Shown here piece after piece: positions 5,867 to 56,855 of a stretch of 64,000 nucleotides of DNA. The position numbers and the translations under genes are program-made. The stretch's first letter is position 1; every line of letters begins with the position of its first letter. The stretch lies in sequence record NC_061448.1. One strand, written 5' to 3'. The notes beneath the pieces were generated by a model. It did no database searches and was not told where the DNA came from. It was given only the letters and a program-made list of their open reading frames with translations.

Positions 5867-6688
5867 TTAATCACCTACCGCAGTATACCAGAAGTCCCAG
5901 CCAGCAGTGTTAGTGCCAGTAGACTTGATGGTGAACCCGCCTAACAGGGCGTTCTCATTCATCGCGCTTGTACCGTCCAGATTGTAGAGCTGGAAAGTCT
6001 TAGCTTGGTTGAGTGCAGCGTTCACGAATGTAATCTGAATGCTGATACAACGGTTGATGAATGCCGTGTTGAATACGACGTGAATCGTATCTGTAGTTGA
6101 CGCGTTCACGACTCGACCCATGTTATGAGTAAAGCCAGTGTTCATATCGCGGTTACTACCAATCCACGCGTTCGGGATAACTGCACCGGTCACAGGGTTA
6201 AGTGCTTGTGATACACGATACTCGTCGATAGCTGCATCACGACCAGGGCTACCCGTAGGACCAGTAGCGCCTGTAGGGCCAACAGAACCCGTGTTGCCGG
6301 TAGCACCGACAGGGCCTGTGTTGCCAGTAGGTCCGTTACGGCCACGCGGGCCACGAGGACCCGGGCAGCCGTCTGCACCGTCACGACCATCACGTCCGTC
6401 AGCACCAGGCAAACCACGTAGGCCATCTTTACCCTGCTTACCTTCACGCCCAGATTTGAGCTGGTCAGCAGTAGGAAGTCCTAAGACGCTTGACTGACTT
6501 CCATCAGGCCAGACGATAGTGAGTGTACCGGTAGTAGTATCGAACTCAGCACCCTGAGAGCCGGGAATCTTTGCAGCCTCTGTTGGGTCTATGAACTCAA
6601 CAGCGGACGCCGTCTTCTTACCTAACACCTTGCCGACGGGGTACGAACCGCCGTCGATAAGAGCAGGGCTAATCTTCGTAAGAGACAT
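5867..6688 (-). CDS. Collagen-like fibre protein (273 aa) with C-terminal beta domain
   Basis: 24 consecutive Gly-X-Y triplets after an FDTTTGTL...GLPT motif. Confidence 0.85.
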   Translation of the reverse strand: MSLTKISPALIDGGSYPVGKVLGKKTASAVEFIDPTEAAKIPGSQGAEFDTTTGTLTIVWPDGSQSSVLGLPTADQLKSGREGKQGKDGLRGLPGADGRDGRDGADGCPGPRGPRGRNGPTGNTGPVGATGNTGSVGPTGATGPTGSPGRDAAIDEYRVSQALNPVTGAVIPNAWIGSNRDMNTGFTHNMGRVVNASTTDTIHVVFNTAFINRCISIQITFVNAALNQAKTFQLYNLDGTSAMNENALLGGFTIKSTGTNTAGWDFWYTAVGD

Positions 6689-11851: not shown

Positions 11852-12343
11852 TTACGGTCGAACCCAGATTGCGCCGGGTGCGATTTCCTGATCGATAGCA
11901 GGGTCGGTGTCTTGCACGAAGACTTGTACTGTGCCTGGGTTACCCGGAGCACCTGTAGGACCAGTCGGACCTGTAGGGCCAGCAGGTCCACGATTGCCTA
12001 CGTAACCCTGTTTGCCTTGCTGACCATCAGTACCACGAGGGCCAGGGCAACCGTCTGTGCCTCGACGACCATCAGTACCCATCAGACCGTCAATACCATC
12101 ACGACCAGCAGGACCAACGCCACCAGCAGGACCGTAGCCGATGCTGTGAATAGTAGGCAGACCCGCGATTTGCAGCTTGCCGATATTAGGGATATTGATT
12201 GCCAACACACCAGTAAGCGCATCGAACGCACCGTTTAGAGTGCTATCGTCTTCTGACGTGTCAACAGTAATACCACCTTGTGTCGCTACGACAGGACCAG
12301 AAGCATTAGCCCCGACGAGCGATATATCAACCTTCGATACCAT
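11852..12343 (-). CDS. Collagen-like fibre protein (163 aa)
   Basis: 23 Gly-X-Y triplets; FDALTGVL...GLPT N-motif; VQDTDP...GAIWV C-motif. Confidence 0.85.
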   Translation of the reverse strand: MVSKVDISLVGANASGPVVATQGGITVDTSEDDSTLNGAFDALTGVLAINIPNIGKLQIAGLPTIHSIGYGPAGGVGPAGRDGIDGLMGTDGRRGTDGCPGPRGTDGQQGKQGYVGNRGPAGPTGPTGPTGAPGNPGTVQVFVQDTDPAIDQEIAPGAIWVRP

Positions 12344-12352
12344 GATTACTCC

Positions 12353-12985
12353 TTACGGCCAGGTTGTGCCTTGATCTTTTGTAGGGTCTACCCAGATAGT
12401 TCCGGCTGCAACGTTGCCCGGTTGGGTAGCACTTACGATGATAGACAGACGACCAGCAGGACCCGCTGCACCAGTAGGACCGGTAGGGCCTGTAGCACCA
12501 GTTGCGCCAGTAGGACCCGTGCCACCACGAGGGCCAGTAGGACCGGTAGGCCCCATAGGACCCGTGCGACCATCTGGGCCAGTAGGACCAACAGGACCAG
12601 GCAGACCATCACGTCCATCAGGACCCGGTAGACCTTGCTCACCGTCAGGCCCCACTTCGCCGTCACACCCAGGCTCACCCGGATTACCATCTCGTCCATC
12701 ACGACCGTCTTTACCGTCAGCGCCTGTCTCACCTCTGCCGCCTTGACGGCCTTCTGGAATATCAGACGCTGTGGGGAAGCCGCCGACTTTTACTGTCTCA
12801 CCGTTAGCGAACTTGAGAGTAAGAATACCCGAAGTCGCATCGAACGATGAATCAGCAGTAAGCTCTGCGGGTACGTCAGAATCAGCGGGGTCTATAGCAA
12901 GCACACCAGACTGAGCGCGAATCGCAGTAGCGGTAGTCGTAGAGCCAGCCTGAATGAGACCGGTCTTAACTTTAATCAGACTCAT
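12353..12985 (-). CDS. Collagen-like fibre protein (210 aa)
   Basis: 34 Gly-X-Y triplets; FDATSGIL...GFPT; VSATQP...GTIWV. Confidence 0.85.
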
Positions 12986-14427
12986 TACTTTTTCTCCGCT
13001 TTCGCAACAATATCCGTGTTGTGTACGAGCACATCACCAACGAAGTAGCAGTCAAATGGATCGACGTCAATATCGACTGTCTTCACATGAGCATCGACGC
13101 GGCGGAACTCGTAAATTGACACAGCTCCTTTGCGGCCTAAAACAGTTTGTCCTGCTTGAACATCACGCGCAGGAACATAGCGCCACACGCTGTCATCGTA
13201 AATCAAGACAGGGTGTTCGTGCGTGAACTTCTGACCGTTGATAACGAAGTAATGATCTTCTTCACCGTATTTAAGAGCAGTCACAGTAGCGTTTACCAGA
13301 TTGCCTTTCAGACTTTGAGAAGACCACTGACGGAAGTTCTTCGGTTGATTAGAGAAGCCAAGCAGACTATCGCCGACGCGCACGTCTTCGACAGCTTTAG
13401 GCCCTGTAATCGTTTCTACCTCAGAACCAAACACGATACAACCAGAAGTTGAAGTGTTCGTAGGGTTACGTGCTACGACTGTCAGAGCAGAACTCACAGT
13501 GACAGTTGGACGTGACGTTTGCCCCATGTCAGTTACTACGCAACGGATAGTGCCTTTGATTGTACGGTCCGCACCGAGCCCAAGACGCAGATAGAAGTTA
13601 ACGATACACGTTGAGGATGTTGTAGCATCGAGCGTTACACCCTCAGTAGTTGTGATAGACCACTGATACTTATAAGGGCCTACACCACCACGCGCGTTGA
13701 CAGGCAGATACGCAAGCGAAGTAAACACATCAGAACCCTGTACTGCACGTTGACCGACCATGTACAGACTTGATACTGACGCAGCAAGAGGTGTTATCGT
13801 AGGCAGAGGCGGAGCTGGGGTAACGTTGTTCGTCGGATATAACCAGACAAACACTTTACCATCTGTAGGCTGCGTACTCGACAGCACAGCAGTAGTGATA
13901 GGCGCTGGGCCTGTAGGACCTGTTGCGCCGGAGATACAGCTCGGTCCGTCGTTTCCGCGAGGGCCTATTGGACCCGTAGGACCATCAGGACCATCTGGCC
14001 CCGTAGGACCATCAGGACCCATTCGACCAGTATCGCCCGGAGGACCGTCTTCACCGTCGCGTCCGGGGTCACCGACAGGACCTGTCTTGCCTCTATTGCC
14101 AACCTTACCCTGACAGCCTTGACGACCTGTTTCGCCGTCACGACCATCTCGTCCATCACGACCGGGGGAACCCGGAGCGCCTCGACGCCCAGGCTTCCCT
14201 TCGCCAAACATAGCGACAGTCGGAAGTCCGGGAACGTTTACCACATCCCCGTTCTTCTTGATGAACACTAACACACCTGTCTTGCTGTTAAATCTTACGC
14301 TTGCGAGTTGTGTAAGAGCAGCAGTATCAGATGATTCAAACTGAGCGCTACCACCAACACCAACCAGCGACTTACCTTCATCGTTGGCGGTTGTTTCGAT
14401 TTGCGAAAGTTTTAACTGTGTTGTCAT
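12985..14427 (-). CDS. Collagen-like fibre protein with C-terminal Hint (intein-like) domain (480 aa)
   Basis: 29+3 Gly-X-Y triplets, a beta domain, then C330...TxxH...LVHN470-T471. Confidence 0.85.
13018..13440 (-). other. Hint / mini-intein domain (141 aa, no homing endonuclease)
   Basis: Block A CIVFGSEV, block B FTHEHP, block F VDIDV..FDCYF, block G LVHN followed by Thr. Confidence 0.85.
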
Positions 14428-23556: not shown

Positions 23557-23578
23557 GTTATTCTCCTCTGTTAGGCAC

Positions 23579-23586
23579 AAATTAGC
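23579..23586 (-). promoter_or_regulatory. Candidate late promoter motif GCTAATTT
   Basis: Between a terminator and the PAAR start (23 nt upstream). Confidence 0.65.
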
Positions 23587-23598
23587 TTGTTACGCAGT

Positions 23599-23636
23599 AG
23601 AAACGGAAACGGGCGACCCGAAGGCCACCCGTTTCC
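23599..23636 (-). terminator. Intrinsic terminator with C(UUCG)G loop
   Basis: Minus strand GGAAACGGG-UGGC-CUUCGG-GUCG-CCCGUUUCC then GUUUCU. Confidence 0.7.
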
Positions 23637-23663
23637 TATGCTTGGATTTTGTCGCTTACTCCC

Positions 23664-23822
23664 TCACACCCGAAGCGAGTGCCCGTCAGCCTTCGCTGTT
23701 GAGCCGGAGTGAATGACCGAGAGTGAAGCCGCATTCCACGGCAACTGAAAGTGACTCTCGGACCATGATAGCAAGTGACCAAGCATCACGATTGCTATCA
23801 GCGACACATAGAACAAAAGCAT
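23664..23822 (-). CDS. Unannotated 52-aa small membrane peptide MLLFYVSLIAIVMLGHLLSWSESHFQLPWNAASLSVIHSGSTAKADGHSLRV
   Basis: AAGGAG 5 nt before the ATG, hydrophobic N-terminal segment of about 19 aa, terminator follows; below the 60-aa ORF-track cutoff. Confidence 0.55.
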   Translation of the reverse strand: MLLFYVSLIAIVMLGHLLSWSESHFQLPWNAASLSVIHSGSTAKADGHSLRV

Positions 23823-24895
23823 GTTTGCTCCTTGTGTCTCTACTGTAAGTAAAACATTTGCAAATGTCGATCAAGTTACTTCAAGTTGCCCTTCGCCCGA
23901 CTTCACTAGGGTTTCAACTCTCTTTCTCTCTTTACCGCCTGGGTTGCGGTCGAACCGCACACAAGAGCAACGCTGCAACGATACGTGGGCGGGAAAACAC
24001 GTATCGCATTCACATCACTCCAGCGAAGGAGGTGGCCCATCGGTGATCTGCGGTGGTTGATACACTCTTTAACAATCGCTCTTGTTGTGCATTAGATCGT
24101 GGTAGGAACGCGATTGACCGCTAACAAGTCCTATACGATATTTCACTACCCGGAAAAGTGGGTTTTGCTATGGCAGCACGTCAACGGCAGCATGGCGCGG
24201 ACACACTCCATTGAACATTGTTAAGGGCAATGCTCAACAGGCTGTGAACAGCTTTGACCAAATGCAGAGTCGCTCGTCGCCCAACATCACTTGAGTATCT
24301 CGTCTGCATTCTTTTACTCCCTGAATACCGTGAAAAGGCACGGCACCCATGAGGGTCTGCGGATGTTTATCACATTAAGACTCTTGCAGTTCAATCCTGT
24401 ACGCAGTGTGTTGAGTCGTCCGCTGGATGACACACTACATACCCTCACCGTGTTGTACATCGGTAGGAAAGAGCTGGTGGAAAGTTGTCATGAAGACTGC
24501 GCGCCTGGAGGCTTGCCACTCTTCCCAATGCACACTAGTGCCAGCTAATGTACATCAGGCAGCGTAGGCTGCGATATTGCTATCCCTGAAAGATTGGTCA
24601 CAGCGTTGAGACTTCGCTCCACCAATCTACGTGCCTAGAGGCAATTGCCGTGCGTATGTCTGAAAAGAATGTAAAACACTGGGCCTTGTGAGCGTCAGCA
24701 GCAGAGCAACGGTCTATCACGTGGGTGCCGGGGTTGTCCTCACGATTACAGAGCATAAGCTCAAACCGGCTGGAGGCTCACATGCCGCCAAGAAATACAG
24801 CGCGTGAGTTTGATGGACCAGCAAGATGCCACCCGCGAAGAAAGCATCTTACCGCAACAGTTAGATATTACTATCTGCAATTTTTATTTACAGAT
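23823..24895. ncRNA. Candidate large structured non-coding RNA or very long structured leader (about 1.07 kb)
   Basis: No credible ORF of 60 aa or more in an otherwise wall-to-wall coding window; more than a dozen hairpins plus nested long-range helices; strand evidence is mixed. Confidence 0.5.
24181..24309 (-). CDS. Possible 42-aa small ORF MQTRYSSDVGRRATLHLVKAVHSLLSIALNNVQWSVSAPCCR
   Basis: GGGAG 7 nt before the ATG; the ATG lies in an 8-bp helix; may be fortuitous within the structured RNA. Confidence 0.25.
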   Translation of the reverse strand: MQTRYSSDVGRRATLHLVKAVHSLLSIALNNVQWSVSAPCCR

Positions 24896-47773: not shown

Positions 47774-48907
47774 TTAAATTTTTCTGCTATCAATGTCAGT
47801 TTGTGGAATATATCTGTTTTCGAAGTATTTCGCTACTACCTCGACGCCGTTTAGCGTATAAACGTTGCGTAAGCTATATCCCCAAACCATCAGTTCGGCA
47901 AGCGTTGCGAAGTGCTCTGCGGGTACTGATTTAATGGTCAACGCGTTCATAGAATCCGGGTGGATTTTCTTACCGCGAATGGCCTGTTCGAACTTCATAC
48001 GGTCTACGTTACGCAGCATCGTATGGTCCACAAAGTGGGCTAATTCGTGCGTAATAACGTGTGCCATACTCAGGCTATTATAACCGCCAAGTAACTGTAC
48101 TAACTGCGCTGGATGGATTGAAATAGCACCATACAGGAAGCCGTGTACGCGATACGTTGCGATGTGACTACCACCACTATCCGAGTTAGCTTTTAACAGG
48201 CCAACATACAGACGTTTAAATGGCAGTTCAAAGTTCAGGCCGATGCCCGGCATAACGTTTTCCTGAATGTCTTTGAGCACATAATCAGGAGGGCTAATAC
48301 CGTTCTTTTCAAGCGTGACGCCCGGAACACGCAAATCATCCATGCCCAGTATTTCGAGATGCACACGACCACACTTAGGAACAGGCTTGGTGGCGTAGTT
48401 ATTAGGCGTACCACCCGGATAGATTGCTGAGGCATACTGCAATGGTTTGAAATTACCAAAATCAGGCATATCCATTAAACGACGCTGTGCCGCTTTCATC
48501 GAGTCAGGCGTGTCTTCCCCAGGACGATCATCGTTGCCAGTTGCTATAGGCGCAGGCTTAGACTCAGGCTCCGGTTCTTTCTCAAGTTTAACAGGCTTGG
48601 GTTCTGGTGCTGGTGGCGCAGGCTTCTTCTGCTTCTCCTCGTAAGGAGTGAAGTCGAAGTCAGGCTTAAAGAGAGCGTCAGGTTTCGCAGTGAATGGGCG
48701 ACTGTTCTGAACGAGCTTGTCACCGTCTTCTCCACTGATTGCATATGCCTGATCGTATTTAGGATGGGCTATGTAGTACAGGTCGTCGCTTACTTTGAGA
48801 AGGCCAATGACCTCGCGCGATTCCATATGGACACCGTTTGAGATCATTGCCGCTTGACCCAGATAGCGATAGTACGTGTAGTCCCCTATAGCTAAACCTT
48901 CTGGCAT
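47774..48907 (-). CDS. Zincin-like metallopeptidase (HExxH) with shared N-terminal domain (377 aa; start revised to MPEGL)
   Basis: VITHELAHFVDH and EHFATLAE; TGATG coupling to the protease stop. Confidence 0.7.
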   Translation of the reverse strand: MPEGLAIGDYTYYRYLGQAAMISNGVHMESREVIGLLKVSDDLYYIAHPKYDQAYAISGEDGDKLVQNSRPFTAKPDALFKPDFDFTPYEEKQKKPAPPAPEPKPVKLEKEPEPESKPAPIATGNDDRPGEDTPDSMKAAQRRLMDMPDFGNFKPLQYASAIYPGGTPNNYATKPVPKCGRVHLEILGMDDLRVPGVTLEKNGISPPDYVLKDIQENVMPGIGLNFELPFKRLYVGLLKANSDSGGSHIATYRVHGFLYGAISIHPAQLVQLLGGYNSLSMAHVITHELAHFVDHTMLRNVDRMKFEQAIRGKKIHPDSMNALTIKSVPAEHFATLAELMVWGYSLRNVYTLNGVEVVAKYFENRYIPQTDIDSRKI

Positions 48908-49686
48908 CAGGCCATCCTTAACAGATGTTCTTTGTAAGTTGCAGCACACGCGAACGCTGGGTCATCTACGCTACTGCACTCGAAGCCGGTAAGCATCTTG
49001 CAGTCACGGTACACCAGACGGCCTGTACGCGCATCGAGGAACGTTGGTTTGTTGAACGCTGTGTGCGAACAGAAGTTACGCATCTTAGGCGTTACCAACT
49101 GACCACAGATACTGCATTTATACGCACGGTACGTTGTGCCTTTGCTGTACGTGTTCAGTTCACCACTCAGGATTCGGTCGCAGCGCTCTTTACAACGCGT
49201 ACGGTCGAATGCAAGCAGCAGAGTAAGACGCGCGTGATCGCCACGGAAGTTCTTGAGCTTGGACAGATTGCTGTCGAAGATCATACCCATAGCCTGACGG
49301 TAGTCTTTGTTGTTGTGCTCGATGAACGTCGGCTTACCAATGAACGTCTGATAAGCAAGACGGCCTTGGTCAGGGTTGAACGTTAACCACTCTTGCAGAC
49401 TAAACGCATCACCGTTAGTGTTCGGCAGTTCAGTGATGTTCACCGGAACCGGAACGATGATATAGTCGCGGATATCGCGTGACGTGTTGTACTGCTCGGC
49501 TGCTTTAGGCAACCACACGTTCACGTCAAGGTTAAAGGAGCCTGTCTGAATACCGAAGCGAGAAGCATCCACACGAATAGATTTAGCTGTACGGCTAACA
49601 TCTTCCTTGTGCATGTCAATCGCGTTCAATCCGACGAGGCCCATGTCTGACGTATCAAACGATTCAGACTTTACTGACTGGGTCAT
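48907..49686 (-). CDS. Prohead (capsid maturation) protease, HK97/assemblin-like fold with Zn ribbon (259 aa; start revised to MTQSV)
   Basis: NTNGDAF, TFIGKPTFIEHN, YSKG...YKCSICG..C.H, FECSSVDDPAF; GGGAG RBS. Confidence 0.75.
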   Translation of the reverse strand: MTQSVKSESFDTSDMGLVGLNAIDMHKEDVSRTAKSIRVDASRFGIQTGSFNLDVNVWLPKAAEQYNTSRDIRDYIIVPVPVNITELPNTNGDAFSLQEWLTFNPDQGRLAYQTFIGKPTFIEHNNKDYRQAMGMIFDSNLSKLKNFRGDHARLTLLLAFDRTRCKERCDRILSGELNTYSKGTTYRAYKCSICGQLVTPKMRNFCSHTAFNKPTFLDARTGRLVYRDCKMLTGFECSSVDDPAFACAATYKEHLLRMA

Positions 49687-50120: not shown

Positions 50121-50999
50121 TTAACCTCGCAATGCACCACGCGCCCATGACTTAGCGAGGGCCAGAGTCATACGAGCAGGGTTGTGCAACTTGACTTCAC
50201 CTTTATGAACAGCAGTGAATGGTTCATGCGCGTTCTCACTGCGACCAGAGCGATAGGCAGCTTCGTTGAAACCATCGAACAGAGTAACTACCCAGCCCGT
50301 AGATTTCTCAGAGCATTCGCCACACGCTTTATCCCACGCAATCTTACCGCACACACGACCACCAGCATTAACTGCGTAGCTGATTTGCTCAGTGCCTTTA
50401 TAAATGTCAGGGGACTTGATGGTCTTGAACGTAACACGCGATGCAGACTCAGAGCGAGGAACCATCTTCTCTTTCAGGGCTTCAACATCCAGTGAAGACC
50501 AGAACGATTCAAACAGCGCTGCAAACTTTTGTTCGACAGGCAGATTGATTGCATTGATTTGCGCGATAGTGCTGGAGCTATCGTTGAGTACTCGGTTGAT
50601 GAAGTACCCGCCGATAATCACAGGCATCTGTGTGACCTGTGCGCCAGTAGTCAGTCCAGCTTTCTTACAGTAGATTTCAGACAGACCGATAGCAAGACGC
50701 GCAAGAGTCATGAACGTTTGCTTCTCGGTCGAGTTAGCGATCTCCGTGTAGATACGCGCAGCGATTGCAGGGACGACAGTACGCTTTGCCACACTCAGAA
50801 TATCTTCCGGTGTGATTGACTGACCGAGCTTCTTACGCGCGGCCAGTTCGAAGGCGTTAATCAGGCTTGCTTTGTTCGCTGGCGTCAACGACTCCCCTAA
50901 CTTGATAGTCGTCTGCTCGGAGCTGCTCACTATGCTCGGAGCTGGAGCTGTCTTGAGTCTCTTCACCCCCGACGTTGACTTCATTCGCTGTACTGTCAT
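50121..50999 (-). CDS. Hypothetical protein (292 aa; start revised to MTVQR), probable head-associated
   Basis: AGGA RBS before ATG 50999; RSESAS motif. Confidence 0.65.
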   Translation of the reverse strand: MTVQRMKSTSGVKRLKTAPAPSIVSSSEQTTIKLGESLTPANKASLINAFELAARKKLGQSITPEDILSVAKRTVVPAIAARIYTEIANSTEKQTFMTLARLAIGLSEIYCKKAGLTTGAQVTQMPVIIGGYFINRVLNDSSSTIAQINAINLPVEQKFAALFESFWSSLDVEALKEKMVPRSESASRVTFKTIKSPDIYKGTEQISYAVNAGGRVCGKIAWDKACGECSEKSTGWVVTLFDGFNEAAYRSGRSENAHEPFTAVHKGEVKLHNPARMTLALAKSWARGALRG

Positions 51000-52104
51000 T
51001 TGTTTGTTCCTGAGTAACAGGCTGCATGTGTTGCAACAGCCCAGAGTTCTGAATTGCCTCATTCAAATCTTCACCACGATGAATGGTGAGTTGAGCGAGG
51101 TAGTTGAGAGCAGGTTCAACCATACCGAGATTACGACAGCCCCAATAAGCTGTTTCGTAACATAGGTCTAAATTAATAGAGGTCTGGTCAAACAAGAAAC
51201 TTTTTGGATTCTGCTTGGCCGCGTCAATACCCTGAATAGCCATGCCGGTAGCATTAATCATATCGTCATGACGATAGAAGATGTCGGCGAGCATCCCATA
51301 GCACTCAATGCGATCAGGGCGGAACGCTATCGCACGATAACAGGCTGCGATAGATTCCTGAGTGAACCCCTGCTTGAATGTCGCTTTCGCCAGCTCGATG
51401 TTAGCGAGTGCAACGTAGTCAGCCCACTTCGCAATACCAGCAAGGCGATCTACTTCACGACGAGCATCATCCAGCAGGTCAGCACGTTCGTGATAGCTCA
51501 CAGCATAGCAGAGTTCACGCGCATAGTAGAAGCTGCAACGATCATCGTGCGGGTAATCACCCACGTCCTTACCAAGCTCAAGCAGATAACCGCGAGGCTT
51601 TGTGTGGTCAGGGTAATGGTCAGTTGCAAACGTTGCGTCTACAGTACGCAGTTGCTGGCCAGGCTTACGAGAAGACAGGACTTCATGCGCACGATACTTC
51701 CAGAAGTAAGAGCGACGACGATACGCTTTCATCTGCTGGTAGTGACTGTCACCGTTGCGCATCAGAATCCAAACTGCTTCGGCGTGCTTAATGTGTTTCG
51801 TACCGCGTAACGTTTCAACCCAGTTAGGGTCATCGAAGCGTTCATCAATATCGAGCCACACAACGAGGTCGTCCTCGGAGAACGGCGTAGCGGCCAGCTC
51901 ACGACTTGCGCCCAGATTACGTTCTTCTGATACGTCGAACATGTGATACAGGTTAGGGTGCGTGAACGCCGAGATGATGTTCGTGGTCTGGTCTTCGCTG
52001 CCAGTGTCAACGATACTAATCGCATCAGCGCCAGCAACATGCTTCAACCACTCACCGATATTCTTTTCTTCATTACGGTAGATAGCCGCTACGCAGATTC
52101 TCAT
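50857..52104 (-). CDS. Glycosyltransferase family 2 with C-terminal TPR-like repeats (415 aa)
   Basis: ICVAAIYRNEE...IVDTGSEDQT, DXD motif WLDIDE, RAHE, TPR-like FYYAREL and AIAFRPDRIECY. Confidence 0.88.
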   Translation of the reverse strand: MRICVAAIYRNEEKNIGEWLKHVAGADAISIVDTGSEDQTTNIISAFTHPNLYHMFDVSEERNLGASRELAATPFSEDDLVVWLDIDERFDDPNWVETLRGTKHIKHAEAVWILMRNGDSHYQQMKAYRRRSYFWKYRAHEVLSSRKPGQQLRTVDATFATDHYPDHTKPRGYLLELGKDVGDYPHDDRCSFYYARELCYAVSYHERADLLDDARREVDRLAGIAKWADYVALANIELAKATFKQGFTQESIAACYRAIAFRPDRIECYGMLADIFYRHDDMINATGMAIQGIDAAKQNPKSFLFDQTSINLDLCYETAYWGCRNLGMVEPALNYLAQLTIHRGEDLNEAIQNSGLLQHMQPVTQEQTNDSTANEVNVGGEETQDSSSSEHSEQLRADDYQVRGVVDASEQSKPD

Positions 52105-52119
52105 ACATGCCTCATTTGG

Positions 52120-53043
52120 TTATACTAAAATGTTACCGCTATCCCACCACTGCTTGCCATAAATATCAGACAGGCGGTATTCAAGGATAAGAGGTTGGGT
52201 CAGGTCGACTTGTCGCATATACTGCTGCGTGTACGGGTTCCACACTGTTCTTTCCTCAGTGTAGAGTCGTATCTGGATTTCAATGTCGCCCTGAGAGTTC
52301 TTCGGTACGAACGGATGGGAATAGTTACCATCAAAGCCTGCACCGAGAGAGTCATCAAAGTAAGTGTACGCACGAATCTCTTCCGCAGTAGTGATTATTG
52401 TAGGTGCGTACACACGATGGTTGTAGTACGAGGTGTAGTCAGCAACGGTTGATTGCATGACAGTACGACGCTTGAAGATTCGCGTCACACCCTGAGCGTC
52501 AGTCTCAGCACGATACTGGTTGTAGTACCAAGTAAGCTCTGCGAACTTGACAGGCTTCAATTGCTCTTGGCCTGTAGCGTACTTCATGAACGGCTTCGCA
52601 GTGAAACGGTGATACGTCTTCTGCGTGTTCAGTCTGTACACCAACATCTGATACGTGTACCACTGATAAACATCAAGGGTAATCGTACCGCTGTCGGATT
52701 GCTGTGTACCGTTAGTCAGGATGTAAGCGAAACAGTCAGCGCCAACATAACCGCTTCGAGGACTGTAGATAAACGCATCGTTGAAGTTGTTCAATCGCAC
52801 AGTGCCTACCATCGGGTCATTGACCTTAATAGCAGAAAGGCGCCAACCCCTTTGAGCTGGCACCTTATCAAGCACACCCTCAGTTGGGCTATGCAATGTC
52901 ACTTCGTCACGAGCGCCTTGTAAGATCTTTTCGAGCGTTATCTCAGTTTCACCTGAGTTACGCACTCGCACAGTCAGGTTCGGAGCCAGCGGTTTGTAGT
53001 TACGCCAGTAATCGAACGTACAAGGCAAAGAGAGCATAATCAC
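52120..53043 (-). CDS. Virion protein with bacterial Ig-like (Big_9/cadherin-like) domain (307 aa)
   Basis: GTV.L.....FIYSPRSGYVGADCFAYILTNG...SDSGTITLDV. Confidence 0.7.
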   Translation of the reverse strand: MIMLSLPCTFDYWRNYKPLAPNLTVRVRNSGETEITLEKILQGARDEVTLHSPTEGVLDKVPAQRGWRLSAIKVNDPMVGTVRLNNFNDAFIYSPRSGYVGADCFAYILTNGTQQSDSGTITLDVYQWYTYQMLVYRLNTQKTYHRFTAKPFMKYATGQEQLKPVKFAELTWYYNQYRAETDAQGVTRIFKRRTVMQSTVADYTSYYNHRVYAPTIITTAEEIRAYTYFDDSLGAGFDGNYSHPFVPKNSQGDIEIQIRLYTEERTVWNPYTQQYMRQVDLTQPLILEYRLSDIYGKQWWDSGNILV

Positions 53044-54986
53044 TCCAGTTTGTATTTGCTCTTGAACTCCGCAATGCTCATAACAGGAATGCCCTTGTCA
53101 ATCGCTTTCTGTAGCTTCGCGGAACCAGAGCCAGGGTCTTTAGCAATCAGAATCGACGTGTCTGCTTTCATGCCGTCAGAGGCAACGCCACCGAGTTCGA
53201 CGATACGCTTCATCAGGTCACGGTCACGCACACCAGTGAATGCTACGTTAACGCCTTTGAGCTTGGAGCTAACCACTTTCACTTTCTTCGGTGCAACGAG
53301 AGTCACGTCCATCTCAACTGCCATGAGATAAGACTTAATCGCAGCGTCAGCAATCTGAGGCGCGAGCTTATCGACACCGTGCATACTGTTGATCTTGACA
53401 GTCAGGTCAGCAGTCTTCCCTTTCTTCAAATATGATTCGAGGTTAGGAATTGCATCGACAACCTTATCGAACGTTGTGTTAGCGCCACGCATGAAGAATG
53501 AAGCAGTAGCTTTGAGCCACGTATTCATCGGCACGCCAGCTTTCAACGCTTTCAGGTCTTTCGCCAACTGACGTCCACGAGAGTCACCAACGATCTCACG
53601 CAGCGTTGCCATAGGCGTCATGAACAATTGCTGCGGTGTTTTGATACCAGAAGCAACGAGCAGCTTACACGTACTCGGTCCTGTGTTCGCAACGTCAAGC
53701 CCTTTCAAGAACGAGCCAAGCATACGAGAGTCAGCAGCACTGGTCTTCGTCTTAGCAACGAACTCAACGCCATTGATCTTGTACTGTACGTCAGGCAGCT
53801 TAGGCTTCTTAGCAGGCTTGAGGATTTCCATGATGTATGGGATTACCTTGCCGCTTCGAATCAACTTAACCTTAGCGCCTGGTCCAAGAGGACGCTTAGG
53901 TCCCATGACAGCACCTTTCTTCTTCGACTTGAGATAGCCGTGCTCAACGTAGAAGCCGTTGTGCGCAGAAGCACGTTCAACCGTAACACCACCTGGCATA
54001 ACAGTAGGCGGGAAGATTGCAACAGGCGCAAGCACACCGTACTTGGACTCTTGATAGATTACGTCTTTGACAGTCACGATAACAGTGTCTGCCTCAACGT
54101 TCATCTTGAACTTGAAAGCGTGTTTAGGGTTAGACGCAGTTGCTTTAGGCGTAGGAACATCACGGGTCATTACGATACCGTCGAGTTCATACTTCGCTTT
54201 GGCAATGCGCTTGTCCAGCCAAGGAATGAGTTCTTCTTCCGATTCAAAACGCAGAGGACCGAAGTGACGAACCACCTCGAATCCCCATTTCTCTAACAGC
54301 TTGAACTGCGAAGACTGTTTGAGTGTAGCGCCTTTACCTCCGATGATACCGAAGCACACCATGTGGACGTACTTGAACTCTTTCGCTGTCTCAAAGTTAC
54401 GCACCAGACCGGATGCAGCATTACGTGCAGCTTTGAAGCGGCCACCAGCAGATTCATGCAGCTTCGCCATAAAGGTCTTGTACGGAATCAGCGCTTCACA
54501 ACGCAACACGACTTGACCTTTCTCAGAGATTTTCTGAGGGATACGCATAGCAGGTAAATGCTGGGACACGTCTTTACCGTGAGTAGCATCGCCACGAGTC
54601 AGCGCACGAACAGGTACGCCTTTCTCATAAACGATTTCAATACTCAGGCCATCGAGCTTATCAGTGAGAACCCAGTCAACGTCTTCGGCCAGAGCTTTAG
54701 ACAATTGTTTACCGCCGAGAACGAACTGATCAAGACTCGCCATTGGAACAGGCAGCTTAACGTCCGAGTCATCACGCGCACCGACTTTACGCGCCAGCTT
54801 AGACTTAGGCCAGCGCTTGTCGATGTAGTTACGGATGTAGTCGTACACAGCGTCCGATATCAGACCCTCAGAGTCAGTGTGAAACGCATCGTCGAGATGC
54901 GCCACCAGCTTCGTCGCTTGAGTCAGATTAAGCATGTCCAGAACCTTATCAGGATTCTTTTCAAGCCGCTTCAAAGAGATTTGCAT
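53040..54986 (-). CDS. ligA: NAD-dependent DNA ligase (start revised to MQISL)
   Basis: ISDAVYD (domain Ia), KLDG, ALTRGD...G.DV, ELDGIV, AFKFK, LIRSGKVIP, C-terminal BRCT (VAFTG); Zn-finger cysteines absent. Confidence 0.93.
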   Translation of the reverse strand: MQISLKRLEKNPDKVLDMLNLTQATKLVAHLDDAFHTDSEGLISDAVYDYIRNYIDKRWPKSKLARKVGARDDSDVKLPVPMASLDQFVLGGKQLSKALAEDVDWVLTDKLDGLSIEIVYEKGVPVRALTRGDATHGKDVSQHLPAMRIPQKISEKGQVVLRCEALIPYKTFMAKLHESAGGRFKAARNAASGLVRNFETAKEFKYVHMVCFGIIGGKGATLKQSSQFKLLEKWGFEVVRHFGPLRFESEEELIPWLDKRIAKAKYELDGIVMTRDVPTPKATASNPKHAFKFKMNVEADTVIVTVKDVIYQESKYGVLAPVAIFPPTVMPGGVTVERASAHNGFYVEHGYLKSKKKGAVMGPKRPLGPGAKVKLIRSGKVIPYIMEILKPAKKPKLPDVQYKINGVEFVAKTKTSAADSRMLGSFLKGLDVANTGPSTCKLLVASGIKTPQQLFMTPMATLREIVGDSRGRQLAKDLKALKAGVPMNTWLKATASFFMRGANTTFDKVVDAIPNLESYLKKGKTADLTVKINSMHGVDKLAPQIADAAIKSYLMAVEMDVTLVAPKKVKVVSSKLKGVNVAFTGVRDRDLMKRIVELGGVASDGMKADTSILIAKDPGSGSAKLQKAIDKGIPVMSIAEFKSKYKLE

Positions 54987-55025: not shown

Positions 55026-56855
55026 TTAACTGGCGATAGGGTCTTTGTTGACAGGGAAGTCTTCGGTCATGTCGAGCACACGATTGAACAGCTTAGGTGC
55101 CATGTCTTTCACATGTTCCGCATAATCGAAGAGGTTCTGTTTACGCGCACGGTTCACACGCACCTGACGTACTTCATCAGGGCTGTTTGTAATGTCGTAC
55201 AGCGTATAGATGACGATGTTATCAGAGGTCGAGTGCGTACTAACTCGGACGATAACCCAATCACGATTGAGCTTCGCATCTGCCTTGAATTTAAGCACGT
55301 CGCCTTCTTCTGCTTCCTCAGCGCGGTGTTGAGGAGTAGATTTGTTGGCAGCAGCAATCTTCTTGGCAGTCTCTTTCGCTTCCTGCTCTGCGGCAGCAAC
55401 GTCAGAGTCCGTGTCTTCGTCAGCTTCGGTTTCGTCTACAGCGTCAGAGGCGTCAGCGGATTCATCCTCCTCCGAATCCTCGTCTTCTCCATCTTCATCT
55501 TCGCTATCAGCTCCTTCGTCGTCAGCGGCGTCATCATCCACAGATTCGTCGTCTGCGTCTGAATCGGTGTCCCCATCATCTGCATCATCAGCATCTGGAT
55601 CGCTATCGTCAGTGTCTTCTTCTGCATCAGGGTCTTCCTCTTCTTCGACAGGTGCAGCGGCTTTCTTACCGGCCTTAGCACGAACTTTCTTAGGAGGCAC
55701 GTCTTCTTCGTCCTCTTCTGGCTCGTCAATGTCTGACAGGTCCAGAGCAGGTTCGTCATGGTCCTGCGAATCATCGCCACCAAACAGAGAACCTATAGAG
55801 TCTTCGATGTTAAACGCATCGCCAGCGAACGGGCTACGTGCAAGAATATCTTCGAGCTTCTGCTCGTCGAGGTCCGCGTCGATTTCGACTTCTTCGATTT
55901 CATCATCCAAGATTTCTTCCTCGATTACACGAATACGCTTGCCACGTTTATCAACACCGTCTTCGTAGACAGTACGCACTTCTGGCTTATCGATCTCAAC
56001 TTCACCAGAACGCACTTTCTTACGCAGCGAACTAAGCTCGGACTCTCGTTCGTGCTTCTTCTTGTTCGCTTCTTTCTGTAGCTCTTTGCGTTGCTGCTTC
56101 TGCTCCAGAATTTTGGCGTTGTTCGCAAGGCGTTGGGCTTCCTGTTCTTCCTCAGCAGAACGACGACGAGCACGACGCACTACGCGACGATATGCTTTAA
56201 CGTCATCAGCAGTCAGAACACCTTTCGGCCAATCGTTGAACGGCAGGATGTTGGTGTCATGTACAATCAGGTCGTATTGAGCATCATCGACTTTAAGGAA
56301 CATACCCTCAGAGTTAATGACGATACCACCTTTGCCTGGGCGCATGAAGCGCACACCAATCATGTCGTTCTTGTATAGCTTGGTCATACCCTTAGAGGTC
56401 TTCACAGGGTATTCAGGGCTTGCAACCATACGCCACTGATAGTTGTCGAAGTTAACGCCGTACACCGACTCAGATGGAACACGACGCGGCGAGAAGCGGG
56501 CAGCATCGAACTGACTGCGGTTGAGTTGACGTTCCATCGTCTTAGCACCAGCAGTCTTAGTGCGGCCAGCAGTCTCACGATTAACAACGTCAGGTACTTT
56601 GCGCAACTTCGATGCACGTTCCATCAGGAACAGGCCAGCAGCTTTGTCGAGTGGGAAGTCAACATGCGGCATATCAGGGAAAATCAGAGTGTAGCGTCCG
56701 CCATTACGCAGCGGGAGAATACCGAAGATATCACCTTCACGAATCATGCGCTTATGAGTTCGTTGGGATACTTCTTTTCCGCGTGAACCTGTATACTTCA
56801 TCCACGCGTACTTCGATACGGCATCGCTATAGGATGCAGATACGGAAAGTACCAT
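55026..56855 (-). CDS. Acidic protein (609 aa; start revised to MVLSV) with two copies of the shared domain, a coiled coil and a D/E tract
   Basis: ORF track; long D/E-rich region; N-terminal LSVSAS. Confidence 0.7.
   Translation of the reverse strand: MVLSVSASYSDAVSKYAWMKYTGSRGKEVSQRTHKRMIREGDIFGILPLRNGGRYTLIFPDMPHVDFPLDKAAGLFLMERASKLRKVPDVVNRETAGRTKTAGAKTMERQLNRSQFDAARFSPRRVPSESVYGVNFDNYQWRMVASPEYPVKTSKGMTKLYKNDMIGVRFMRPGKGGIVINSEGMFLKVDDAQYDLIVHDTNILPFNDWPKGVLTADDVKAYRRVVRRARRRSAEEEQEAQRLANNAKILEQKQQRKELQKEANKKKHERESELSSLRKKVRSGEVEIDKPEVRTVYEDGVDKRGKRIRVIEEEILDDEIEEVEIDADLDEQKLEDILARSPFAGDAFNIEDSIGSLFGGDDSQDHDEPALDLSDIDEPEEDEEDVPPKKVRAKAGKKAAAPVEEEEDPDAEEDTDDSDPDADDADDGDTDSDADDESVDDDAADDEGADSEDEDGEDEDSEEDESADASDAVDETEADEDTDSDVAAAEQEAKETAKKIAAANKSTPQHRAEEAEEGDVLKFKADAKLNRDWVIVRVSTHSTSDNIVIYTLYDITNSPDEVRQVRVNRARKQNLFDYAEHVKDMAPKLFNRVLDMTEDFPVNKDPIAS

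Follow-up and report, generated by a model that had tools for sequence, protein, structure and literature searches.

The window analysed here, a stretch of 64,000 nucleotides (nt), corresponds to bases 62001-126000 of NC_061448.1, the genome of Erwinia phage pEa_SNUABM_1 (a jumbo Alexandravirus of 266,939 bp whose host is Erwinia amylovora), and the subjects of this report are its gene gp147, which encodes a glycosyltransferase (GT), and four genes for collagen-like fibre proteins, gp105, gp109, gp110 and gp111. Over the 3.1 kb surrounding gp147 the match to pEa_SNUABM_1 was at 100% identity, and the RefSeq coding sequence MPK71_gp147, which carries the product name 'beta-1,4-glycosyltransferase', was identical to the open reading frame (ORF) at 50857-52104 on the minus strand. 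All annotated genes of the window lie on the minus strand and form a single long array that runs from the tail sheath through the head to the baseplate/tail-fibre genes, with non-structural genes (NAD-dependent DNA ligase, thymidylate kinase, Nudix and HNH) scattered within it. An earlier note on this DNA had described a GT2 enzyme with tetratricopeptide repeat (TPR)-like repeats at 50857-52104 and four collagen-like proteins in the same window; the former was confirmed by the ORF, Pfam, matches to consensus-TPR structures and an AlphaFold2 model, and the latter by a six-frame scan and Pfam Collagen. For the genome as a whole, annotation and a Gly-X-Y scan together gave an inventory of one annotated glycosyltransferase, gp147, and four collagen-like genes. 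The features concerned are the following (window coordinates; aa, amino acids; for the enzyme, the supporting evidence is given in parentheses).

50857-52104, minus strand: gp147, GT2-TPR glycosyltransferase, 415 aa, ATG start (ORF translation, RefSeq MPK71_gp147, Pfam, PHROG, AlphaFold2)
51589-52104, minus strand: GT-A catalytic domain of gp147, aa 1-172 (Pfam, invariant columns, GmaR match, AlphaFold2 model)
51043-51585, minus strand: TPR-like helical domain of gp147, aa 174-354 (consensus-TPR matches in the Protein Data Bank (PDB), AlphaFold2 helices, Foldseek)
50860-51018, minus strand: disordered, acidic, Ser/Glu/Gln-rich C-terminal tail of gp147, aa 363-415 (predicted local distance difference test score (pLDDT) <50, alignment)
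5867-6688, minus strand: gp105, collagen-like fibre protein of 273 aa with a Gp53-like C-terminal domain, proposed acceptor
6236-6451: Gly-X-Y run of gp105, 24 triplets, 7 of them Gly-X-Thr
11852-12343, minus strand: gp109, collagen-like fibre protein of 163 aa, proposed acceptor
11927-12133: Gly-X-Y run of gp109, 23 triplets, 3 of them Gly-X-Thr
12353-12985, minus strand: gp110, collagen-like fibre protein of 210 aa, best acceptor candidate
12446-12751: Gly-X-Y run of gp110, 34 triplets, 11 of them Gly-X-Thr
12985-14427, minus strand: gp111, collagen-like fibre protein of 480 aa with a C-terminal Hint/PT-HINT domain, proposed acceptor
13939-14199: Gly-X-Y run of gp111, 29 triplets, 5 of them Gly-X-Thr

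Pfam PF00535 (GT2) matched aa 8-104 of gp147 at 27.6 bits against a cut-off of 23.3, and PHROG 13126 covered the protein end to end (E 2e-116); an NCBIfam search with gp147 returned nothing specific. Residues invariant in the family include D27, D33-T-G-S36, D38, R68, D85-x-D87 (the DxD motif), W135, H140-E141, H163 and R171, and the D85-x-D87, D33-T-G-S and H140-E141 elements were invariant over 44 diverse members as well as in an alignment of 25 homologues. In the AlphaFold2 model of gp147 (pLDDT 86; predicted template-modelling score, pTM, 0.79) aa 1-172 fold into a GT-A core and aa 174-354 form nine helices; consensus-TPR structures aligned to aa 204-296 with E 7e-21 when the family profile was used. 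This TPR-like domain is presumed to be the acceptor-binding module. No membrane segment was visible on inspection of the model, made without formal transmembrane prediction. The core of gp147 measures 362 aa, and 70 of 80 viral homologues have 345-370 aa. gp147 is predicted to be a soluble GT-A glycosyltransferase that requires a metal (DxD) and belongs to the SgtA-like GT2-TPR family, SgtA being an enzyme of Clostridioides difficile. The acidic tail is a variable element: the Alexandravirus, Y3 and Yoloswag types have it, whereas the Dickeya JA11 type and the wider family do not.

The four collagen-like proteins are short fibre proteins of the tail-fibre/baseplate module; all of them pass Pfam Collagen and match tail-fibre PHROGs, and no further Gly-X-Y run was found in a six-frame scan of the whole 267-kb genome. 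They are paralogues with a common N-terminal domain of ~75 aa and differing C-terminal heads. The earlier description of segments rich in Gly-Pro-Thr and Gly-Ala-Thr stood as a local statement only: segments rich in GPT, GAT and GNT triplets do sit at the C-terminal (distal) end of each of the four helices, and in gp110 a stretch of 13 triplets close to the C-terminal end of the helix includes 10 that are Gly-X-Thr, but pooled over the four fibres Gly-X-Thr accounts for just 26 of 110 triplets (24%; 13-32% per protein).

Other properties of the fibres were observed alongside these. An invariant Cys occurs in the helix of all four paralogues at about the tenth triplet, and the orthologues in phage PaBG (record 196649-203913) have 29/34/23/25 triplets as compared with 29/34/23/24 here, at a capsid identity of only 45%. 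The near-constant triplet counts and the invariant Cys suggest a constraint on stalk length and possible disulfide links between the chains. The Hint/PT-HINT domain of gp111 (aa ~330-470; Pfam PF07591, 28.3 bits) is a module of the autoprocessing type and forms the tip of this fibre protein, and the gp111 orthologue of phage NCTB carries the annotation 'intein domain protein'.

A profile built from the jumbo-phage lineage only was searched against 1.8 billion representative proteins and retrieved 882 clusters at E<1e-30, mostly proteins of ~350 aa that were matched from residue 1 to ~344 and hence over both domains. A second search returned members named 'tetratricopeptide repeat-containing glycosyltransferase' from Desulforamulus, Clostridium and Caproiciproducens. 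A match in Synechococcus phage S-SRM01 was set aside because it covers just 92 aa of the GT domain. The family is present on at least 596 IMG/VR stretches and occurs in crAss-like phages, freshwater actinophages and jumbo phages. Its viral gene neighbourhoods were sampled at 80 IMG/VR loci anchored on family members, with up to 10 kb on each side (1098 kb scanned), and 119 viral loci picked at random through an arbitrary 14-mer anchor (1003 kb scanned) served as the control; a locus was called collagen-like when the DNA fetched held a Gly-X-Y run 8 or more triplets long. Collagen-like runs were found at 55 of the 80 GT-anchored loci versus 8 of the 119 controls (odds ratio 30, Fisher p 5e-21), and the share of Gly-X-Thr among the triplets was 63% at the former and 30% at the latter. 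After dereplication at 70% identity, 29 of 40 clusters were collagen-positive. The runs lay on the same strand as the GT gene in 53 of the 55 positive loci and upstream of it in 45, at a median gap of 1.8 kb, and collagen-coding sequence made up 3-5% of the bases up to 5 kb from the GT and ~1% of those at 5-10 kb, as compared with 0.49% in the controls. None of the 119 control loci contained a family GT.

The link between these enzymes and collagen genes reaches beyond the main subfamily, since it is seen also with a two-GT-domain member on a crAss-like contig (P0200), whose flanks hold a GPT-rich collagen gene of 1041 aa and another collagen ORF, and with a GT8-GT2-TPR-GT2 fusion (P0058), which is followed by a GPT-rich collagen ORF. 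The cultured Actinomycetia phage DSL-LC01 has the gene order collagen, collagen, hypothetical, halogenase-like, GT. Among Clostridia, 50 of 80 species-representative genomes anchored on the family carried a Gly-X-Thr-rich collagen gene (65% Gly-X-Thr) within 10 kb of a family GT. One Clostridium locus encodes a Collagen+BclA_C protein followed by two family GTs, and a Caproiciproducens locus, near spore germination genes, encodes a collagen protein, two family GTs and an epimerase. gp147 aligned by BLASTP with a Clostridium GT that lies beside a Collagen+BclA_C gene (P0280) over 344 aa and both domains (1e-22, 26% identity). A different arrangement was observed in a Desulforamulus-like locus (L219), where at least four GT2-TPR paralogues are clustered with nucleotide-sugar, aminotransferase and acetyltransferase genes and no collagen run lies within 10 kb; on this ground some family members may extend glycans or act on other acceptors.

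The characterized enzyme to which gp147 is most usefully compared is SgtA, a protein of 358 aa with a GT-A domain at aa 3-225 and four TPRs at aa 262-358, whose gene lies beside bclA3 (PMC7157674). SgtA is Mn-dependent and moves beta-O-linked N-acetylglucosamine (GlcNAc) from UDP-GlcNAc to threonines of collagen-repeat peptides (PMC7157674). By this published description, through which alone the comparison was made, SgtA and gp147 share the GT-A plus TPR architecture, a similar core size and the DxD/metal feature. SgtA acts on Thr in the BclA3 collagen repeats, and the phage fibres, as proposed acceptors, hold local Gly-X-Thr clusters; a further likeness is that bacterial homologues of gp147 stand beside Collagen/BclA_C genes. 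The two systems differ in that the phage collagens are short (23-34 triplets, with the low Gly-X-Thr content given above) and belong to a virion fibre instead of a spore surface, and in the disordered acidic tail that gp147 has in addition. BclA of Bacillus anthracis is a Gly-Pro-Thr-rich, collagen-like filament with O-linked glycans, and it has far more GPT repeats than the phage fibres. We conclude that gp147 is a divergent member of the SgtA-like enzymes, found in a virion fibre setting in a phage of a Gram-negative host.

The best full-length fold matches to gp147 were the glycocin S-glycosyltransferases SunS and ThuS (PDB 7MSN and 7MSK; Foldseek E 3e-12, template-modelling score ~0.5, ~375 columns), in which a GT-A domain is likewise followed by a TPR-like helical domain and which were also matched by sequence profile (E 4e-5). 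These enzymes glycosylate a polypeptide, namely Cys residues of small bacteriocin precursors encoded in dedicated clusters; unlike their loci, that of gp147 is not flanked by glycocin precursor or export genes, and sequence identity is 14-17%. Among solved structures, teichoic-acid and lipid-carrier GT2 enzymes scored far below the matches that glycosylate proteins or peptides. The best sequence match to a solved structure was the GT domain of GmaR from Listeria monocytogenes (E 1e-6 with the single sequence, 8e-18 with the profile), a flagellin O-GlcNAc transferase and MogR anti-repressor that combines GT2 with TPR and O-glycosylates a fibre-forming protein.

The GmaR match also bears on a different proposal, in which gp147 modifies a host molecule, for instance a flagellin-like protein or an envelope glycan precursor, in the service of host take-over or superinfection exclusion. 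In keeping with such a role, the PHROGs category is 'moron, auxiliary metabolic gene and host takeover', the GT domain has a weak match to PHROG 841 (GtrB-like, E 1e-4), and in published commentaries phage GTs are usually taken to act on the host surface or on DNA. However, GmaR is a protein of ~640 aa with a regulatory role, its match is confined to the generic catalytic domain, and nothing ties gp147 to flagellin. A seroconversion enzyme of the GtrB type was rejected, the E 1e-4 match being the only one, with no membrane segment in the model and no GtrA/GtrC-type partners annotated. As the gp147 gene moreover lies within the morphogenesis array and not among early genes, and the conserved neighbours of the family are collagen genes, we regard a host target as distinctly improbable.

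The family-level association with collagen genes, the protein-directed architecture and the inventory of one GT and four collagen genes make fibre O-glycosylation the best explanation of the data, and we consider it somewhat probable that gp147 O-glycosylates the collagen-like fibres of the phage. Under this reading gp147 would be made late, together with the morphogenesis genes, and its TPR domain would bind gp105, gp109, gp110 and gp111 as acceptors. The GT-A domain would then move a sugar from the host nucleotide-sugar pool to the Thr in the Y position of Gly-X-Thr, the donor being, by analogy with SgtA, presumably UDP-GlcNAc. The Gly-X-Thr triplets are concentrated distally on each triple-helical stalk, and the virion would thus bear O-glycosylated collagen-like tail fibres. 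The earlier proposal of an SgtA-BclA3-like action on the fibres is in this form partly upheld: the homology, the collagen linkage in phages and Clostridia and the SgtA architecture lend it strong indirect support, whereas the GT gene stands apart from those for the collagens and the fibres are poor in Gly-X-Thr. The spore-nap-like coat of the earlier note found no support, the four proteins being short fibres of the tail-fibre/baseplate module, and the roles that it offered (stabilisation, shielding, adhesion) are suggestions only.

Several observations weigh against the assignment of the fibres as acceptors. gp147 lies 37-45 kb from the collagen genes, whereas the gap in other phages is 1.8 kb at the median and sgtA is encoded beside its substrate gene. 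The Gly-X-Thr fraction of the fibres, 0.13-0.32, compares with a median of 0.62 for collagens beside the family, and only 7% of the linked loci are at or below 30%. Identity between gp147 and the collagen-linked members is just ~25-30%, and acceptor specificity may therefore differ. Because the 80 viral loci belong mostly to one subfamily (7 clusters at 50% single linkage), the viral counts are not fully independent, and ~30% of family loci had no collagen gene in the DNA available, among them a member that follows baseplate genes without a collagen run. One member (L015:3269-6102, on a contig of ~40 kb) is located in a replication module beside an ATP-dependent ligase. Within the jumbo-phage lineage itself, co-occurrence of GT and fibres is weak evidence: in PaBG the family GT is accompanied by orthologues of all four collagen fibres in matching positions, so that enzyme and fibre set alike belong to the core of the lineage and occur together through joint inheritance, not independently. 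In the sister phage phiRSL1, whose capsid protein is 33% identical, there is neither a family GT nor a collagen-like ORF, which counts in favour of the link as one co-absence. Motura, BcepSauron, PhiXhv-15 and vB_PpuM-Aura are sister genera with the capsid gene in common. A measured glycan on any phage of the lineage was not found in the accessible literature; the PaBG proteome paper does not mention GT or collagen, and the Dickeya phage paper contains no proteomics.

The last of the opposing observations concerns the genes around gp147. These form a tightly packed block in the order DNA ligase, gp148 (immunoglobulin (Ig)-like), GT, gp146, gp145 and prohead protease, of which the following were characterized.

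53040-54986, minus strand: gp149, NAD-dependent DNA ligase, upstream boundary of the block, two genes from the GT (Pfam, PHROG)
52120-53037, minus strand: gp148, Ig-like (Big_9) protein directly upstream of the GT (weak Pfam Big_9, PHROG 36743)
50121-50888, minus strand: gp146; throughout the lineage the GT is followed by an ORF in this place (AlphaFold2 pLDDT 79)
48907-49686, minus strand: gp144, prohead (head maturation) protease, downstream boundary of the block, three genes from the GT (PHROG 18299)

The block order recurs in phages Lu11, PaBG and NCTB and in two metagenomic jumbo contigs at a GT identity of 25-45%; the ligase is in the equivalent position in Lu11, PaBG, NCTB and the metagenome contigs, and the prohead protease in Lu11 and PaBG. 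In PaBG the block is intact despite genome rearrangement, with the major capsid gene more than 100 kb away. Because the block is conserved to ~25% identity and survives the PaBG rearrangement, its conserved position hints at a head-related or other role for gp147. Two phrases of the earlier note are affected by this context. The claim that gp147 stands 'among virion genes' applies only loosely, in that the gene lies within the morphogenesis array, as its near neighbours include a DNA ligase and the fibres are far off; the argument from a 'structural operon' was not supported, given the DNA ligase, thymidylate kinase and Nudix genes interspersed in the array.

The conserved block supports a second alternative, namely that gp147 glycosylates another virion or assembly protein, the likeliest candidates being those of the head block (gp146, gp145, gp148, the prohead contents or the capsid). 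The arrangement ligase-X-GT-overlapping ORF-small ORF-prohead protease is what has been kept across the genomes named above, and the start of gp146 overlaps the stop of gp147 by 32 nt, an overlap that suggests translational coupling of the two genes. Precedent exists in the mycobacteriophages, whose GTs decorate their own capsid and tail-tube proteins (Freeman et al. 2023, as cited in PMC12619734). The acceptors in that system are C-terminal extensions of capsid and tail-tube subunits; in pEa_SNUABM_1, however, the major capsid protein gp140 and its neighbours have no Ser/Thr-rich extension, and the richest stretch of the capsid protein is internal (aa 321-350). The capsid was rejected as an acceptor after all 56 annotated window proteins had been scanned, of which only gp111, gp140 and gp151 reached at least 40% Ser/Thr per 30 aa, none of them terminally. 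gp146, for its part, is without a recognizable fold or family and its homology is patchy over the lineage, and the family-wide neighbourhood signal is one of collagen genes and not of head genes. On this evidence we judge an acceptor in the head block to be rather unlikely.

Searches with gp146 gave no match in Pfam, NCBIfam or the PDB by sequence, nor in Foldseek with the AlphaFold2 model, and a PDB search with gp148 yielded noise alone. The gp146 model comprises a helical N-terminal domain and a beta-rich C-terminal domain, and the C-terminal ~100 aa are kept in phage NCTB at 34% identity. The block is bracketed by two KMPT-N ('KTSC and metallopeptidase N-terminal fusion domain') paralogues, gp143 (47774-48907, minus strand) and gp150 (55026-56855, minus strand), and the metagenomic jumbo contigs L012 and L222 have a KMPT-N gene in the same position. 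Over 43-62 kb of the window a promoter and terminator scan performed no better than shuffles, and the single convincing terminator in that range follows the tail sheath gene gp152. Elsewhere in the window, positions 23557-24895, between gp116 (PAAR) and gp117, comprise 1.3 kb without an ORF of more than 85 aa in an otherwise tightly packed genome; the GC content there is ~0.50, and a search for a tRNA, an Rfam match or notable repeats found none.

The third alternative is that gp147 acts on DNA or nucleotides, adding a sugar to a hypermodified base as protection against restriction. DNA glycosylation is the textbook role of a phage GT, the enzyme is encoded near a DNA ligase in the jumbo lineage, and on the unrelated ~40-kb contig L015 the family member beside the ATP-dependent ligase is accompanied by ThyX, dUTPase, thymidylate kinase and replication genes. 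Against this stand the GT-A plus TPR fold and the nearest relatives, which glycosylate proteins or peptides. The T4 alpha/beta-GT type, with its GT-B fold and hydroxymethyl-pyrimidine pathway, was rejected because gp147 has the GT-A plus TPR fold. No hydroxymethylase is present among the 337 annotated features of the genome, although the annotation is sparse and its absence is therefore unproven; nucleotide-sugar genes are likewise not annotated, while dCMP deaminase, thymidylate kinase and DNA methyltransferase are. phiRSL1, moreover, encodes a deoxyuridylate hydroxymethyltransferase yet has no family GT, and its ligase has no adjoining GT. We therefore hold action on DNA to be highly improbable, and it is the ATP-dependent ligase neighbour in L015 together with the adjacency to the NAD-dependent ligase here that keep this small likelihood alive.

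Family GTs and DNA ligases are thus neighbours in two phage types that are unrelated to each other, with an NAD-dependent enzyme in pEa_SNUABM_1 and an ATP-dependent one in L015. In phiRSL1, positions 163104-171498 (L313) hold genes for the deoxyuridylate hydroxymethyltransferase, a sulfotransferase-like protein, a nucleotidyl-transferase, a sugar pyrophosphorylase-like protein and adenosine 5'-phosphosulfate (APS) kinase, a cluster that resembles a DNA hypermodification pathway and is absent from the pEa_SNUABM_1 annotation.

Glycosylation of the collagen-like fibres, the reading we favour, has a wider counterpart, namely that tailed phages O-glycosylate their collagen fibres with SgtA-like GT2-TPR enzymes of their own, as a widespread trait that has so far gone undescribed; we put this forward tentatively, as a proposition a little short of probable. 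No paper linking phage GTs to collagen-like proteins was found in the searchable literature, and as far as could be seen there the family-wide association between GT2-TPR enzymes and collagen genes is undescribed. Phage GTs are routinely annotated as DNA-protection or host-serotype enzymes, and those near collagen-like genes have been read in that literature as DNA-protection or host-surface enzymes. Within the accessible literature, virion glycosylation has been described for mycobacteriophages only, and if the wider proposition is true it would be common well beyond them.

The existence of a large GT2-TPR family linked to Gly-X-Thr-rich collagen genes in both phages and spore-forming bacteria provides a testable substrate prediction for hundreds of phage genes, and the association points to the collagen-like fibres that are common in phage tails being glycoproteins. 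Members of the phage group to which pEa_SNUABM_1 belongs are used in biocontrol cocktails against fire blight, according to PMC9686651, and its relatives Y3, Dickeya AD1 and JA11, and Lu11 have been given the label hairy Myoviridae (PMC6143709). If the fibres are glycosylated, then in the 'hairy' jumbo lineage to which pEa_SNUABM_1 belongs these sugar-bearing collagen fibres might correspond to the hair-like appendages that electron microscopy shows on the tails. Fibre glycans, if present, would bear on the make-up of these hairs, on the interpretation of host recognition, of particle stability and of binding by antibodies or lectins, and on how bacterial collagens are stabilized without hydroxyproline.

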